Shown here: piece by piece, positions 108 through 62,263 of the stretch
How positions within the stretch are numbered: position 1 is the stretch's first letter
Layout of the letters: the number at the start of each line of letters is the position of its first letter
Sequence record: MN018232.1
Length of the DNA stretch: 64,000 nt
Direction: 5' to 3' (one strand)
Translations under genes and position numbers: made by a program
Notes under the pieces: model-generated
Seen by the model: only the letters and a program-made list of their open reading frames with translations
Databases searched by the model: none
Told to the model about the DNA's origin: nothing

Positions 108-342
108 AATCAAGTCTCCTCACTTTTCTTTTTCTCCTCTCTTCCTGATAGGAGAGATCAGAGTTACTAAGGAAACTTTTTGGAATTGTTTCCTTATTGG
201 ATTCTACCATCACTACTTTAGACAAGTCAACTGCAGTAACCTTGTCTTCAATTACCGTCATCATATTGGGACAACCACAACAATGTGTGTGATGGTCACT
301 TCGGATTTCTTTGTTACACTGTTTGCATCTTACAGTAATCAT
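94..342 (-). CDS. Small hypothetical protein with putative Zn-binding Cys motifs
   Basis: 82 aa, CKQC and CCGC motifs; co-oriented with the array. Confidence 0.75.
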   Translation of the reverse strand: MITVRCKQCNKEIRSDHHTHCCGCPNMMTVIEDKVTAVDLSKVVMVESNKETIPKSFLSNSDLSYQEERRKRKVRRLDFEVR

Positions 343-364
343 GGGTCATGTTTGTAATTCGATA

Positions 365-436
365 TGGGAGTTACAAGATTCGAACTTGTGACCAATTGCG
401 TGTAAAGCAACTGCGCTACCGCTGCGCTAAACTCCC
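365..436 (-). tRNA. trnV: tRNA-Val(TAC)
   Basis: GGGAGTT/AACTCCC acceptor, GTTGC-TT TAC AC-GCAAT anticodon arm, GTTCGAATC T-loop. Confidence 0.95.
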
Positions 437-442
437 TCAAGG

Positions 443-524
443 TGGGTGGTCTTGGATTTGAACCAAGGTAGGCAGAGCCAATGGATTTACAGTCCATCTC
501 CTTTAACCACTCGGACAACCACCC
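443..524 (-). tRNA. trnY: tRNA-Tyr(GTA)
   Basis: GGGTGGT/ACCACCC acceptor, ATGGA-CT GTA AA-TCCAT, long variable arm, GGTTCAAATCC. Confidence 0.95.
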
Positions 525-527
525 TAA

Positions 528-600
528 CTGACCCACCAGGGCTCGAACCTGGGACAGGCTGATTAACAGTCAGCTGCTCTACCAACTGAGCTATAGGTCA
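528..600 (-). tRNA. trnN: tRNA-Asn(GTT)
   Basis: TGACCTA/TGGGTCA acceptor, GCTGA-CT GTT AA-TCAGC, GGTTCGAGCCC. Confidence 0.95.
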
Positions 601-791
601 TTGGATTTTTCCTCTTTGGCGGTCTTGAAGTAAAGTTTGTAATACCGTTGTTTCATTTCTGAAATGGTATTCATGTCCTCTTCGTACCCCATGTATTTAA
701 GGAGTTGAAAAGAACCCTCAAGTTCACTGATCAATCTTAACATATTGATTGAAGATCTGTCAAGACCCCCGAACGTATACTCTTTACTCAT
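591..791 (-). CDS. 66-aa hypothetical protein inside the tRNA array
   Basis: MSKEYTFGG...; AGGAGG RBS before ATG at 791. The 116-aa track ORF extends wrongly across tRNA-Ala/Thr. Stop lies within tRNA-Asn. Confidence 0.75.
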   Translation of the reverse strand: MSKEYTFGGLDRSSINMLRLISELEGSFQLLKYMGYEEDMNTISEMKQRYYKLYFKTAKEEKSNDL

Positions 792-807
792 AAACCTCCT
801 AGGAGGA

Positions 808-880
808 TGGAGAATAGGAGACTCGAACTCCTGACAGCCTGCTTGCAAAGCAGGTGCTCTACCAACTGAGCTAATTCCCC
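808..880 (-). tRNA. trnA: tRNA-Ala(TGC)
   Basis: GGGGAAT/ATTCTCC acceptor with G3:U70, CCTGC-TT TGC AA-GCAGG, GTTCGAGTC. Confidence 0.95.
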
Positions 881-955
881 TGGAGCCTCTGACAAGATTT
901 GAACTTGCGACCTGAGCTTTACAAAAGCCCTGCTCTACCACTGAGCTACGGAGGC
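881..955 (-). tRNA. trnT: tRNA-Thr(TGT), CCA encoded
   Basis: GCCTCCG/CAGAGGC acceptor, GGGCT-TT TGT AA-AGCTC, ends GGCT-CCA. Confidence 0.93.
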
Positions 956-956
956 A

Positions 957-1149
957 TGGGTGGGTAGAAGGATTACATTATACCTTCAACAGAGGGGTCT
1001 CACTAATGTTAATGATACCTCTGAACTTTCAGGACCCTTGGTATGGGTTCTCATGCCTCCTGTCTCCAGGTCACATGGTGGCCACCACAGCCTTCCTTAC
1101 TATACAATGTTGGGTGCTTGACCACACCAACTTTTCTGTCATACCCTAT
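957..1149 (-). ncRNA. Structured non-coding RNA, manA-motif-like
   Basis: No credible ORF; at least 6 stems (GAAGG/CCTTC, CAGAGG/CCTCTG, ACCC/GGGT, CCTG-GAGA-CAGG, TGGTGGCCACCA, GTTGG/CCAAC). Resemblance to manA RNA is from recall only. Confidence 0.6.
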
Positions 1150-1168
1150 GGAGATGATCAATCTCCAA

Positions 1169-1242
1169 CGACTCAAGTAGGATTCGAACCTACGACCGAC
1201 TGCTTAGAAGGCAGTTGCTCTATCCAGCTGAGCTATTGAGTC
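1169..1242 (-). tRNA. trnR: tRNA-Arg(TCT)
   Basis: GACTCAA/TTGAGTC acceptor, ACTGC-CT TCT AA-GCAGT, GGTTCGAATCC. Confidence 0.95.
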
Positions 1243-1245
1243 AAG

Positions 1246-1280
1246 TGGTAGTTCCTATCGCCTCTAACCCTGAACTACCA
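1246..1280 (-). ncRNA. Stem-loop RNA element at head of tRNA array (possibly abiF-motif-like)
   Basis: Perfect 9-bp stem TGGTAGTTC/GAACTACCA with 17-nt purine-rich loop AGGGTTAGAGGCGATAG; family name from recall. Confidence 0.4.
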
Positions 1281-1295
1281 AGGGGATTACAGCAG

Positions 1296-1688
1296 TCAAC
1301 GGAACTGGTTATTACCTGTTCCAGAGTTCCAACCACCTGGACCTTCATGGAAGTTCTCAGAACCTCCTTGTGTCTCTTTGACAGTGTTCCAGTTCTTAGT
1401 CGCCAATTCATACATCTCTTGATGAATGTTTGGTGACTCGACCTGGTGGGTGGTCTCCCTCTCGACCTTCTTATTATGGTCGATCTCCTTCTGTTTGTCA
1501 AGGGCCTTTTTGGTGAGGACTGGTTTTCCAAACCACGGATCCTCAGGAAGAATGACAGGTGCAGGAACAGACCTGAAGGTTGCAATAGGTTTCTTTACCT
1601 TACTGACAACCTTTTTAATAATACCTTCACTTTTAGGAATAAAGATATTATAGATTGATTTGAGTTTAGTCTTAATCTTCTTAATCAT
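1296..1688 (-). CDS. Hypothetical protein (130 aa)
   Basis: ATGA overlap with upstream gene; basic N-terminus. Confidence 0.75.
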   Translation of the reverse strand: MIKKIKTKLKSIYNIFIPKSEGIIKKVVSKVKKPIATFRSVPAPVILPEDPWFGKPVLTKKALDKQKEIDHNKKVERETTHQVESPNIHQEMYELATKNWNTVKETQGGSENFHEGPGGWNSGTGNNQFR

Positions 1689-2290
1689 ACCAAAATCATT
1701 CGTTTAGTGTAGTCATATGCATAGTGTTCACGGTATCCCTTGATACCCCAACCCAACCAGTAGTAGGAGGGTACCATGTATTGTCTCACAGTTAGACCAC
1801 CACCTTCGAACTCAGGTAGCACCTTTTGGAACTGGCTCTCGTTCACCATGTAACGAACCTGACAGTCTAGTGCACTCGGGTTACATTTATATTTAGCGGC
1901 AAAGTTTCCGAGACCACGATAACGACCAATAGAAGTCCATTGAATCAGACCATAACCACCAGTATGACACTGGTTATAATTTACTCTTGCACCACCTTCA
2001 CAGATGTTAGGATGGAAGTTACTTTCTGACCTGATGTTACCCATGATCGTTGCAAGTGCATTACGATCAGTGATACGAGTCTGTTCTTGAAGTTGTGCGA
2101 GAACATATCTCTCATTAGGACTGCAATCAGGACAATCCCATGTCTTCCTTACAACTTCGATGGGAACAGCCTTCTCTTCATTCACAGTCACATCCACAGA
2201 TGGTGGATTTTTAATCTCATCAGTTGTGGCATATGCACAAGCCGAAGGAATAATAGTTGCCAATGCAAATGGAAGAAGTTTTTTAAACAT
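1685..2290 (-). CDS. Phage tail-lysozyme-like cell wall hydrolase with N-terminal signal peptide (201 aa)
   Basis: ALATIMGNIRSESNF and GYGLIQWT motifs; start reassigned to MFKKLLPFALA at 2290. Confidence 0.8.
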   Translation of the reverse strand: MFKKLLPFALATIIPSACAYATTDEIKNPPSVDVTVNEEKAVPIEVVRKTWDCPDCSPNERYVLAQLQEQTRITDRNALATIMGNIRSESNFHPNICEGGARVNYNQCHTGGYGLIQWTSIGRYRGLGNFAAKYKCNPSALDCQVRYMVNESQFQKVLPEFEGGGLTVRQYMVPSYYWLGWGIKGYREHYAYDYTKRMILV

Positions 2291-9716: not shown

Positions 9717-10526
9717 TCAGTCTCTTGCTGAGGTATGTTTTGACATAATTTTTGCTTCTCTTTCTTGAGCTTTAGTCCGACCGTACTTAGACTGAAGTTT
9801 ATTACGGAAGGAACGTTGTGCTGCTTGAAGATCACCCTCAGAAGGTTTTGATCCACGTTCTTGTTTAGGTTGACGTGACCCTGGATTTTCTTTGCGGAAC
9901 TTGTCAACTATTCCCTTATACTTTCCTTCCTTTTCATACCCAGCAACCTTCTTGCCCTGTGCTTCTACTTCTGGATTTCTTTCTTCCTTGGCAAGTTTAG
10001 TTGCAGTAGCATACATTACAGACTTGGCATCATCACCATATCTCTTTTCAAAACCACCCTTGGACTTCTTCATGCCCTTTACAATTCTTTCTTTCTCCTC
10101 TTTCTCATCAGAAGAAAGGGTTCTTTCCTGAACTTGTGTTGGAGACTGGGCACTCTTCTTTCTCTCCTTCGCAATCTTCATATCAGTCTTTGCAATATCG
10201 GCTTCTTTCTTAGCCCTTCTCATCATGAGTGCTTCAAGATTCTCTTCTACCTTACCAGGCTTTCTACCTTCTTTCTTGTCCTTCTCATCTTGCATACGTT
10301 TGAGATCTTCAGCACTTAACTTCTCGTCAAGTTCTGTGACTTCAAGAATTGTTGCACCAATCTCGTCGAATGCTTCTGTCATCTGTGGGTTGATGACGAT
10401 CTTGTTCTTTACTTCTTTCGTATCAATCTTTCTCTCAGACTTCTTATCAGTCTTTGGTTCTGAGGAAGGAACATCTACAACCTCTCTGAGATCCTCTCTC
10501 CAATTAGAAAATTTATTTCTCTTCAT
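9717..10526 (-). CDS. Highly charged hypothetical protein (269 aa)
   Basis: Lys/Glu-rich, modular. Confidence 0.8.
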   Translation of the reverse strand: MKRNKFSNWREDLREVVDVPSSEPKTDKKSERKIDTKEVKNKIVINPQMTEAFDEIGATILEVTELDEKLSAEDLKRMQDEKDKKEGRKPGKVEENLEALMMRRAKKEADIAKTDMKIAKERKKSAQSPTQVQERTLSSDEKEEKERIVKGMKKSKGGFEKRYGDDAKSVMYATATKLAKEERNPEVEAQGKKVAGYEKEGKYKGIVDKFRKENPGSRQPKQERGSKPSEGDLQAAQRSFRNKLQSKYGRTKAQEREAKIMSKHTSARD

Positions 10527-60442: not shown

Positions 60443-62263
60443 TCAGAATTCAATAACAAGTTTGATGTCTTCGATTTGGTCGGGAGCGCGAGTGATTAGA
60501 CGGCGGTTCTCGACGTAGATAACATCACCAGAGTTATTTTCAATCTCAGGTGCTGCTAGACCAGAAGCAAATGTGGAACCTAGTAGAGTTCCTGCGTAAC
60601 CTGTATCTACATTACCAGATGCTGCAGACTGTTCGCCAGAGATTGCATTAGCACCGTTGCTTTCAAATGCTCTTACTACACCTTGATCAGTGTGTGCGTC
60701 ATTTGTTTGAATGTACTTAAGTACACCATCAGTTGTTGAACCACTGTCTAAAGTCCAAGAAACAACTGTACCATAAGCAGTTCCACCAGTTACAGTTTGC
60801 TGGATCTTTTCATCTGGGATGAAGTCTGCTGTTGCACCAGTTACTTTAACTGCTTTTAGACCCGATAGAGTATCTGAGGTTGCAAACGTGGTTGTTCCCC
60901 AGTTGTATGGATCTTTAATAATTCCGATTCTACGGAAGTCATTATCAACAGGGAAGTCGCCAGAACCTTCGGAATAAGTTAGACGAATATTCGTCATAAC
61001 ACGCTTAGCATTCAACTCAGTTTCGAAGTCTGATCCATGACCACCCTGAGGAGGAAGTACAACTTCAATAGCACCACTACCATCCCAAGTTCCTGGTGTT
61101 GAAACACCAGTGCTCAAACCAGGATCTGAGAAGAGGTTGCCATTTGAAAGAAGTACATTAGCGTAGGTGTAACCAGATCCACGAGACTCAATTTCAGCAG
61201 AAGTGATCTGACCATTACCATTTGTAGTAAACTTAACTACACCACCTGCACCATCACCCTTGATACCAGTGTAAAGAGTTTGAGTTGCTGGAAGATCTGC
61301 ACTTGTGGTGCCTGCATCTTCAATTAGTGCAACATCGATAGATCCAGCAACAGCAAGAGCTTCTACAGTCTGTCTTGAAGCGTTTGCTGGAAGAACGATG
61401 GGCATAAAGTCGGATGAGAGGAACTTTAGTACATCATCGGTTGGGATGGTGTACATATACTTCCAAATGTATCCTGCACCAGTGGTTTCCGTATAAAGAC
61501 CAGTAACTGCGTCATAGTTACCACCAGTTGTTAGTGGTTCTTCAGTTGCGTTTTGACCAGTTGCATTTGAAGGATCTTCGCCGTTATAGAGGCACTTGAA
61601 CACTTCATAGTTTGAATTCATAACATAGAACTTAGCATCAGAGATACTGGTAGCACCTGTTGCTGTTTGCTTTCCGATTTGACCACCGCCTCCAGGAGTA
61701 GCAGAGTAGTCAGGTTTCCACATGTCAAACTTGGGATTAGCAACTAGATCCCAGTTATAGCGACGAATTACGCTTCTAGCGAAAGAATCTGTAATTCTTT
61801 TTGCTGCAATGATCTCATCATATAGAGAAATCTTTTCTCTCTGGTTGTCTAGAGGAAGAGGTGGCACATCTTCGGTAGCGTATCTGTAAACGCCAGTGAC
61901 TGCTGTGGCACCAGTGTCAGAACCGCCAGAATAACCTTTGATTGTCGTACCAAGTGCTGGGGTTGAGTTAACACCGTTGCTGCCAAAAACGTCGGTTAGG
62001 AGGAGGGCACTATCATAAACAGCAGCAATCGTGGCGCGGAAAGTAGTAGTCGCATAGGTTCCGACATACACTTCATCACCTACAGAGAATGCCGTGGTGT
62101 TCTTGGAGTAAATCTCCAAGTATGCTTTCCAGGGTTGTGGACGACCCACGAAGAAATACATTCTGGATCGTTCGGCGCTAGTATCTGTAGCACCTTCAGT
62201 TAGCGATTCGAGGAATTGCTTCGCGTTAAAAATTCTAAACTTATCAGAGATAATAGCAGCCAT
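60443..62263 (-). CDS. gp8: Baseplate wedge subunit (T4 gp8-like)
   Basis: MAAIISDKFRIFNAKQF, IIAAKRI, VFKCLYN, GYIWKYMYTI, QIEDIKLVIEF. Confidence 0.9.
   Translation of the reverse strand: MAAIISDKFRIFNAKQFLESLTEGATDTSAERSRMYFFVGRPQPWKAYLEIYSKNTTAFSVGDEVYVGTYATTTFRATIAAVYDSALLLTDVFGSNGVNSTPALGTTIKGYSGGSDTGATAVTGVYRYATEDVPPLPLDNQREKISLYDEIIAAKRITDSFARSVIRRYNWDLVANPKFDMWKPDYSATPGGGGQIGKQTATGATSISDAKFYVMNSNYEVFKCLYNGEDPSNATGQNATEEPLTTGGNYDAVTGLYTETTGAGYIWKYMYTIPTDDVLKFLSSDFMPIVLPANASRQTVEALAVAGSIDVALIEDAGTTSADLPATQTLYTGIKGDGAGGVVKFTTNGNGQITSAEIESRGSGYTYANVLLSNGNLFSDPGLSTGVSTPGTWDGSGAIEVVLPPQGGHGSDFETELNAKRVMTNIRLTYSEGSGDFPVDNDFRRIGIIKDPYNWGTTTFATSDTLSGLKAVKVTGATADFIPDEKIQQTVTGGTAYGTVVSWTLDSGSTTDGVLKYIQTNDAHTDQGVVRAFESNGANAISGEQSAASGNVDTGYAGTLLGSTFASGLAAPEIENNSGDVIYVENRRLITRAPDQIEDIKLVIEF

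Follow-up and report, generated by a model that had tools for sequence, protein, structure and literature searches.

When first described, the manA motif was judged to be probably cis-regulatory and a candidate riboswitch (Weinberg et al. 2010, PMC2864571), and the cis-regulatory description was repeated in a later phage genome paper (PMC9964418). A preprint of July 2026 reports, from cryogenic electron microscopy (cryo-EM) of in-vitro-transcribed manA RNAs, octamers, decamers and a 60-subunit icosahedral-like cage of ~430 Å; its authors still regard manA as a putative 5'-untranslated region (5'-UTR) element and are silent on its in-vivo ends, tRNAs and circles (10.64898/2026.07.01.735769). 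Closed RNA-only nanocages are also formed by GOLLD and ROOL, phage and prophage RNAs that often lie by tRNA islands (10.1101/2024.12.08.627333, PMC5737381). Herein, we analysed a window of 64,000 nucleotides (nt) from the T4-like cyanomyovirus Synechococcus phage S-B43 (MN018232.1), in which a manA RNA (Rfam family RF01745) lies between two tRNA genes. We consider it fairly probable that this RNA, which is a variant within an established family, is released by tRNA processing, probably circular, self-assembling and active in trans.

The Rfam covariance search matched RF01745 over the full model (1-192/192) at window positions 1167..957 on the minus strand, with 82.5 bits and an E value of 1.7e-19; family membership was defined by the Rfam gathering score of 55.2 bits. 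A first-pass annotation of the window, made from the sequence alone, had noticed a multi-stem RNA among tRNA genes and called it manA-like. The multi-stem RNA was seen on the minus strand between tRNA-Arg(tct) and tRNA-Thr(tgt), and the end-to-end Rfam match makes the label right. The annotation had further treated a GGAGAT/ATCTCC hairpin as a flanking feature outside an element at 957-1149. This hairpin is in fact manA stem P1, and therefore the RNA spans 956-1168 and leaves 0-1 nt to each tRNA. The insert occupies all the space between the tRNA-Arg discriminator G1169 and the tRNA-Thr +1 nucleotide G955 (Table 1), and its 3' end reads ACCCACCCA, as had been claimed, with the last position at 957. 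Across the tRNA-manA region, the RB11-B genome (PV261925.1) is 99.5% identical to the window, and its sole manA is the tRNA-embedded copy. Translation of the 956-1168 region was considered and rejected: it holds only open reading frames (ORFs) of 41-77 amino acids that run into the tRNAs, and its substitutions are base-pair compensatory.

With a tRNA on each side, the S-B43 manA is not located in the 5' UTR of a protein-coding gene, and the description of canonical manA as a cis-regulatory 5' UTR does not fit this locus. We nevertheless kept the element in the manA family, since the 5'-UTR setting is a contextual rather than a structural trait. Canonical manA and the S-B43 copy share the multi-stem junction, the 5'-3' pseudoknot, the GUGGUG and ACCA loops and the terminal hairpins, and the hosts of both are T4-like cyanophages. 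They differ in score (82.5 bits for S-B43 vs 105-177 bits), in length (213 vs 190-202 nt) and in the extended GAGA-capped hairpin of the S-B43 copy. Moreover, canonical copies start at a promoter of their own and run into a terminator or an ORF, whereas the ends of the S-B43 copy would be set by the flanking tRNAs. The earlier statement that there is no protein gene to regulate holds locally; farther along the same strand there are a DUF7212 ORF, beyond two tRNAs, and a mannose-6-phosphate isomerase gene, ~3 kb downstream.

Since BLAST reached just the S-B43 group and phage ACG-2014f, pattern scans and profile searches were needed to find relatives. IMG/VR and the JGI metagenome contigs were scanned with sequence patterns to collect copies, and the hits were then analysed with Rfam, nhmmer and ARAGORN. 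One pattern, GGCTGTGGTGGCCNCCA, returned mostly unrelated contigs, and the scan of a plasmid collection for manA gave zero matches. The scan of a genome collection gave a single true manA, on a cyanophage-like contig of a Nonlabens assembly. On this 188-kb contig (L161, NZ_RMVE01000006.1, 'Nonlabens xiamenensis'), manA is followed by transaldolase, and a tRNA-Arg lies 2.5 kb downstream, a layout like that of L012 and L025, two cyanophage loci. The contig is as long as a T4-like cyanophage genome and is therefore probably of phage origin, included in a bacterial assembly.

The manA copies divide cleanly into two context groups. Group A comprises 46 distinct loci, including those of S-B43 and ACG-2014f, which score 77-91 Rfam bits and are ~210 nt long. 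In all of the 37 distinct copies that could be assessed, a tRNA ends 0-1 nt ahead of P1; this 5'-flanking tRNA is Arg-UCU in 20 copies, Val in 5, Gly in 4, Asn in 4, Thr in 3 and Met in 1. On the other side, a tRNA begins 0-3 nt past the tail in 30/43 copies; in those that lack one, an ORF begins 15-45 nt farther on. Both flanks carry tRNAs in 24/34 copies, and the inserts between tRNA borders measure 208-218 nt. We found neither a description of this tRNA-bordered subclass nor a report of circular RNA in cyanophages in the literature, and neither the main text of Weinberg et al. 2010 nor its supplement files readable as text mention tRNA neighbours of manA.

Several group-A loci showed peculiarities of their own. 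The RefSeq record of ACG-2014f (NC_026927.1) omits both manA-flanking tRNAs, tRNA-Arg (L001 2410-2483, ~132746-132819) and tRNA-Asn (L001 2697-2768, ~133033-133104), which Rfam (69.6 and 62.3 bits) and ARAGORN clearly identify. Past the manA tail of L048 lies a tRNA-like sequence, TCCACAATAGCTCAGCGGTAGAG..., without an ARAGORN call; it may be a tRNA that has degenerated or whose anticodon arm is unusual. L107 likewise has what resembles the beginning of a tRNA past the tail, but its contig stops 37 nt after manA. In L128 (WLWH01014148.1), the manA profile matches 56-210 only, the first 55 nt with P1 and the 5' pseudoknot strand are gone, and there is no upstream tRNA, while tRNA-Asn still abuts the 3' end; this is possibly a decayed copy.

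Group B, the canonical form, consists of 15 distinct copies of 190-202 nt that score 105-177 bits and occur in cultured phages including P-HM2, P-SSM2, P-SSM4, S-SSM7, P-TIM40 and S-TIM4. An adjacent tRNA was never seen in these 15 copies. Upstream of each copy come, in order, a conserved terminator hairpin whose loop contains TTGAC, a T-run and a TATAAT box, and P1 starts ~6 nt past the resulting TTGAC-N16/17-TATAAT promoter, i.e. at the transcription start. A terminator ends 9/15 copies, either straight after the pseudoknot strand or ~20-30 nt farther on. Thus, the 5' end of P1 is set by transcription initiation in group B or by a tRNA 3' end in group A, and what is constant in the family is a 5' end at P1, not the downstream gene. 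The upstream hairpin of group B serves two purposes, as the terminator loop holds the -35 TTGAC of the next promoter and the T-run forms the spacer before TATAAT; examples are L005 1607-1572 (minus strand) and L011 2169-2133 (minus strand).

Across the family, the genes downstream of manA include those for a 2-oxoglutarate (2OG)-Fe(II) oxygenase, an HNH endonuclease, gp32 and transaldolase, as well as tiny ORFs and tRNAs. These genes are mutually unrelated, which makes a riboswitch for one pathway unlikely. A cis-acting leader or riboswitch would sense a metabolite or protein and control read-through, processing or translation of downstream genes; its targets at this locus would be the tRNA array and the same-strand genes beyond, including the mannose-6-phosphate isomerase gene and a wcaG-led polysaccharide cluster. 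This idea has behind it the rating given to manA in the discovery paper, a fold complex enough to match an aptamer, the RB11-B isomerase gene on the same strand, and ORFs that start 15-47 nt downstream of 13/43 group-A and 6/15 group-B copies. However, the window contains no terminator, anti-terminator or start-site-masking element that overlaps the conserved fold, and the nucleotide after the S-B43 manA tail already belongs to a tRNA. Nor does group B help, as nine of the 15 copies are promoter-manA-terminator units in which the terminator stem starts beyond the pseudoknot strand and does not overlap it. The downstream genes share no common pathway and form no coherent ligand-tied set, the RNA is seen detached from its flanks and end-joined (see below), and large homo-oligomers in vitro are untypical of riboswitch aptamers. 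The doubt that the first-pass annotation cast on cis-regulation is therefore borne out by the lack of expression-platform-like sequence after the element and by the unrelated downstream genes, and we judge a cis-acting role to be quite improbable.

The fold was assessed on an alignment of the 37 distinct group-A inserts (alignment A2), to which the following covariation counts refer. The Rfam architecture together with the group-A hairpin extension comprises 55 pairs, with 93.5% of cells paired as compared with 41-50% in slid controls. Compensatory changes were found at 29/55 pairs, a number reached in 0/500 shuffles, which backs the fold. The minimum-free-energy fold of the S-B43 insert has -69.4 kcal/mol (z = -2.64 vs shuffles). 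The structural hallmarks of the family, namely the pseudoknot between the P1 region and the 3' end and the GUGGUG and ACCA loops, are present, with the loops invariant or nearly so. The GGGUA/UACCC pseudoknot is paired in 100% of the copies and 3/5 of its pairs covary, with GGGAG/CUCCC, GGAUG/CAUCC, GGGCA/UGCCC and GGGUG/CACCC as variants in relatives. It sets the tail ACCCAU beside the base of P1, and therefore the RNA ends are parted only by a short single-stranded loop. After the pseudoknot, the tails vary among relatives (ACCCAU, ACCC, ACAU, ACCUU, AACCAAC and others); a tRNA-like CCA acceptor mimic at the 3' end was rejected, since CCA is not conserved in them.

Of the individual structures proposed earlier for this sequence, the GAGA tetraloop proved real: it corresponds to TCTC at 1063-1066 of the plus strand, is closed by CCUG/CAGG and is unchanged in the 37 relatives, and 3/4 pairs of its stem covary. 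The 12-bp palindrome, TGGTGGCCACCA, is indeed present at 1077-1088, but it is not conserved as a palindrome, with about half of the relatives having G for A90. Two other proposals failed. The AUACCAA/UUGGUGU pseudoknot can pair in S-B43, yet it is only 72% paired in relatives, where most of its pairs are broken, and it competes with a strongly covarying hairpin. The GGUAUG/CAUACC long-range pair has zero covariation and is lost when GGGUA varies; the partner of GGGUA is UACCC near the 3' end.

The same data bear on the possibility that the insert has no particle function of its own and serves tRNA arrays as a structured spacer, or rides in them as a selfish passenger, for example by aiding the folding or processing of neighbouring tRNAs or by spreading through array recombination. 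tRNA arrays are dense anyway, with other spacers of 0-4 nt in the S-B43 array, the flanking tRNAs differ among phages in a way that suggests shuffling, and one copy (L128), possibly decayed, lacks its first 55 nt. Against this stand the strong purifying selection on ~55 base pairs and long invariant loops in 37 distinct copies, the covariation between two hairpin loops, which would have no role in a passive spacer, and the maintenance of the same RNA as an independent promoter-terminator gene in many other cyanophages. We regard a spacer or passenger as very improbable.

Four ocean metatranscriptome runs (X2, X4, X25 and X26; assembled contigs) were compared with window positions 300-1750. Run X2 contained 95% of the sampled manA words vs 20% of those in the surrounding 1.3 kb, and run X4 contained 53% vs 11%; the protein-coding flanks within 300-1750 were covered in 0/4 runs. 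Runs X25 and X26, which come from different studies, each yielded one contig, of 242 and 243 nt, respectively; the depths of the two contigs were 9.8 and 19.5. The X25 contig aligned as two pieces to 956-1039 and 1018-1167, with a joint from 1167 to 956; the X26 contig aligned as two pieces to 957-1096 and 1067-1168, with a joint from 1168 to 957 and one letter between. The joint thus connects the nucleotide after the upstream tRNA with the end of the 3' tail. In both contigs, the first 30 nt equal the last 30 nt, and a length of 212 or 213 plus 30 nt is as expected of an unbranched cycle in a graph of 31-letter words. The substitutions in both contigs are exactly the ten that separate locus L014 from the window, indicating that the contigs stem from a sister phage, not from S-B43. 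In the assemblies of both runs, the RNA of the sister copy has a head-to-tail junction, consistent with a circle. The joined ends, 1168/1167 and 957/956, coincide with the predicted RNase Z and RNase P sites of the window. Release as a discrete RNA by tRNA processing, as put forward in the first-pass annotation, is accordingly supported by the tRNA abutment on either side (37/37 at the 5' end, 30/43 at the 3' end) and by the end-joined sister copy of 212/213 nt in two metatranscriptomes.

A tandem or permuted manA template in DNA could also produce such a joint. The head-to-tail junction pattern had 0 matches in 2.9 million viral contigs and 241 million metagenome records, which are not DNA matched to the RNA samples, while an internal group-A pattern recovered 18 viral and 35 metagenome loci from the same collections. 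None of the 46 distinct loci holds two copies, and a relaxed junction pattern was also without a match. As far as exact patterns can tell, DNA holds neither double copies nor the junction, and we rejected a tandem or permuted template in DNA as unlikely.

Alternatively, tRNA processing may release a linear RNA, and the joints may arise from library chemistry or from template switching, in which reverse transcriptase, on reaching the 5' end of one molecule, continues at the 3' end of a second. Just two contigs with the joint were found, at modest depth, and the joints of the two runs are one nucleotide apart; linear contigs with flanks came from two other runs, and no phage ligase gene is recognised in the RB11-B annotation. 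Nevertheless, assemblies from two different studies both contain the joint in an unbranched cycle whose length is exactly that of the circle plus 30 nt, and such a cycle arises only if junction words reach a usable depth and precursor offers little competition. The fold sets the RNA ends a few nucleotides apart, and the one-nucleotide difference fits trimming by an enzyme before ligation. Joints made by template switching would still leave the RNA ends at the positions proposed here. We therefore consider a purely linear product unlikely.

Two pairs of loops in the fold could make contacts between or within molecules. The strands ACAUU and AAUGU, whose pairing is absent from the Rfam consensus, are 94% paired, with compensatory changes at 5/5 pairs (equalled in 0/500 shuffles) and slid controls of 32-45%. 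The UGGU and ACCA loops are complementary in 97.9% of cells. From their complementarity, ACAUU/AAUGU and UGGU/ACCA could form kissing contacts, either inter- or intramolecular. In the cryo-EM structures, all manA oligomers are built from pentamers via an L5-L7' kissing loop, to which is added either an L8-L9' kissing loop or a GNRA-receptor contact with an L3-L8' kissing loop (10.64898/2026.07.01.735769). By position, L5 would correspond to UGUGGUG, L7 to AUACCAA, L6 to the GNRA-type loop, here GAGA, and L8 and L9 to the two covarying loops ACAUU and AAUGU. If this mapping is accepted, the pentamer-building contacts are conserved in group A and show covariation there.

Taken together, these results suggest the following course of events, in which manA would be transcribed with the phage tRNAs as a single precursor, as the layout implies. 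Cyanobacterial tRNA genes generally lack an encoded CCA, and RNase Z cuts after the discriminator; RNase P makes the 5' end of the following tRNA, and such cuts leave a 5'-phosphate and a 3'-OH on the insert. Given the exact abutment and the RNA ends of the sister copy, host tRNA-maturation nucleases would set the ends: an RNase Z-type cut after the tRNA-Arg discriminator would give a 5'-phosphate at U1168, and an RNase P cut at tRNA-Thr +1 would give a 3'-OH at U956. These ends were observed for the sister copy; for the S-B43 copy, they are predicted from the tRNA borders. P1 and the 5-bp pseudoknot (RNA nt 23-27/203-207), both supported by covariation, bring the ends side by side, and the ends would be sealed into a circle of 212/213 nt. 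Joined RNA was found for the sister copy, and joining in vivo would presumably be the work of a ligase, which for 5'-phosphate/3'-OH ends would need to be an ATP-dependent Rnl-type enzyme. Judging from the kissing-loop complementarity and the published cryo-EM of other manA RNAs, loop-loop contacts would then build pentamer-based closed particles. Speculatively, the stable particle might act in trans in the infected cell; most plausibly it would be a scaffold or decoy for sequestering a host or phage factor rather than a riboswitch for the next gene.

Several points weigh against this course of events. The end-joined form is known from assembled contigs of the L014-type copy only, not from the exact window sequence, and if a linear RNA is abundant, its ends could become joined by template switching or by a ligase step while the library is made. 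Run X2 holds a low-depth linear contig of S-B43 type (878-1159, one mismatch) that bridges tRNA-Thr and manA, and run X4 holds a 1-kb linear relative with flanks; these linear contigs are precursors or DNA. The 3' neighbour of L014 itself is a 2OG-oxygenase ORF, not a tRNA, so another nuclease must make that 3' end and RNase P is not universally required; we guess that its 3'-end sequence A/AUUC, cut after the first A, would suit an RNase E-type cut. For the 13/43 group-A and 6/15 group-B copies with an ORF close downstream, noted above, there may be a cis effect on translation or stability. An RNA ligase is not among the annotated genes of the RB11-B genome. Oligomerisation was reported for other manA RNAs in vitro, so that for group A it is argued by analogy. 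As a separate matter, the 157-amino-acid 'DNA ligase' of RB11-B (L145 25652-26125, minus strand) matches only DUF6433 (E 5.5e-54), and its name looks unfounded.

The layout of the locus resembles other RNAs found in or around tRNA genes. Like manA, GOLLD and ROOL are phage-borne, homo-oligomeric, often located in or near tRNA islands and without a known protein partner. They differ in that their sequence and fold are unrelated and the RNAs are 3-4 times longer, and neither a circular form nor exact excision at tRNA borders has been reported for them, while the cage of group-A manA would follow from the loop contacts. In the T4 tRNA cluster, tRNA-Arg, the commonest tRNA before group-A manA, is followed after 1 nt by the stable RNA D (species 2; region 71053-71247, L150 5054-5248, minus strand) and then by RNA C (species 1). 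These T4 RNAs, of 119 and 139 nt, were examined as manA homologues and rejected, as they gave no manA or Rfam family signal; they are analogous only, and we know of no oligomerisation or circularity of either. A weak, sub-threshold tRNA-Sec-like match (17.5 bits) was seen in rnaC. The tRNA-intron circular RNAs (tricRNAs) and the archaeal circular RNAs made by the tRNA-splicing machinery are stable by-products of tRNA maturation; they come from introns that the splicing endonuclease cuts out with 5'-OH and 2',3'-cyclic phosphate ends and that RtcB seals. They share with the proposed manA product a stable circle derived from tRNA maturation, whereas the S-B43 manA is an intergenic insert.

manA has been an orphan riboswitch candidate since 2010 and has formed RNA-only cages in the test tube in 2026; what this locus informs is the form in the cell. 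To this, the locus and its relatives add exact ends set by a promoter or a tRNA, frequently a terminator of its own, expression in the sea and an end-joined form. If the proposed course is true, manA moves from a 'leader' to a free-standing RNA particle and, with GOLLD and ROOL, points to a strategy that phages use repeatedly, in which RNAs that form cages are placed in tRNA arrays. It would also be, to our knowledge, the first example of a phage RNA circle made from the spacer of a tRNA array. A wider proposal, which we hold tentatively, is that group-A manA RNAs are natural phage circles: RNase Z together with RNase P (or RNase E) would excise them, their own pseudoknot would hold the junction for sealing, and covarying kissing loops would assemble them into icosahedral-type cages inside infected cyanobacteria. 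The whole family would then consist of stand-alone, particle-forming RNAs wrongly filed as riboswitch candidates, a small counterpart of GOLLD and ROOL. Both S-B43 and ACG-2014f form culturable pairs with Synechococcus in which this question can be tested directly.

Table 1. Features of the manA locus of Synechococcus phage S-B43, with positions in the window.
Feature	Position	Strand	Remarks
tRNA-Arg(UCU)	1169..1242	-	ARAGORN; Rfam tRNA 72.4 bits, canonical 7-bp acceptor stem, U8
Predicted RNase Z site	1169/1168 boundary	-	tRNA-Arg discriminator G1169 directly precedes first manA nucleotide
Group-A manA RNA, 213 nt, entire inter-tRNA insert	956..1168	-	Rfam, covariation, RNA extent of sister copy
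P1 hairpin, RNA nt 2-20, extreme 5' end	1149..1167	-	93.7% paired, 5/7 pairs compensatory
Pseudoknot 5' strand GGGUA, RNA nt 23-27	1142..1146	-	Partner 962-966
Loop UGUGGUG	1083..1089	-	Invariant in 37 copies; UGGU complements ACCA
Group-A-specific hairpin extension CCUG-GAGA-CAGG (GNRA-type tetraloop)	1059..1070	-	4 pairs, 100% paired
Loop AUACCAA	1038..1044	-	ACCA at 1039-1042
Loop strand ACAUU, RNA nt 160-164, long hairpin	1005..1009	-	Partner 975-979
Loop strand AAUGU, RNA nt 190-194, last hairpin	975..979	-	Partner 1005-1009
Pseudoknot 3' strand UACCC, RNA nt 203-207	962..966	-	Sets 3' tail next to P1
Single-stranded 3' tail ACCCAU and predicted RNase P site (956/955 boundary)	956..961	-	Joint in RNA contigs aligns to 956/957
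tRNA-Thr(UGU)	884..955	-	ARAGORN and Rfam; begins 0-1 nt past manA tail
tRNA-Ala	808-880	-	Co-directional array, ARAGORN/Rfam
DUF7212 ORF	591-791	-	Between tRNA-Ala and tRNA-Asn
tRNA-Asn	528-600	-	Co-directional array, ARAGORN/Rfam
tRNA-Tyr	441-524	-	Co-directional array, ARAGORN/Rfam
tRNA-Val	365-436	-	Co-directional array, ARAGORN/Rfam

The DUF7212 ORF inside the tRNA array encodes 66 amino acids (E 5.5e-34) and has a strong Shine-Dalgarno sequence; small ORFs like it recur in related tRNA arrays, e.g. L144 and L126. In RB11-B, the feature annotated as a 223-nt 'tRNA-Leu' at the genome end (209905-210127, L149 9905-10127) is matched by Rfam only at 9905-9989, and is either over-extended or holds something else. 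The same genome carries a wcaG RNA (66.4 bits) between the genes for a cupin-type mannose-6-phosphate isomerase and a 2OG-Fe(II) oxygenase, in a region at L146 10732-10835 and 10918-11265 on the minus strand (RB11-B 60732-60835 and 60918-61265). This wcaG RNA lies ~3.2 kb downstream of manA on the same strand and heads a large glycosyltransferase cluster.

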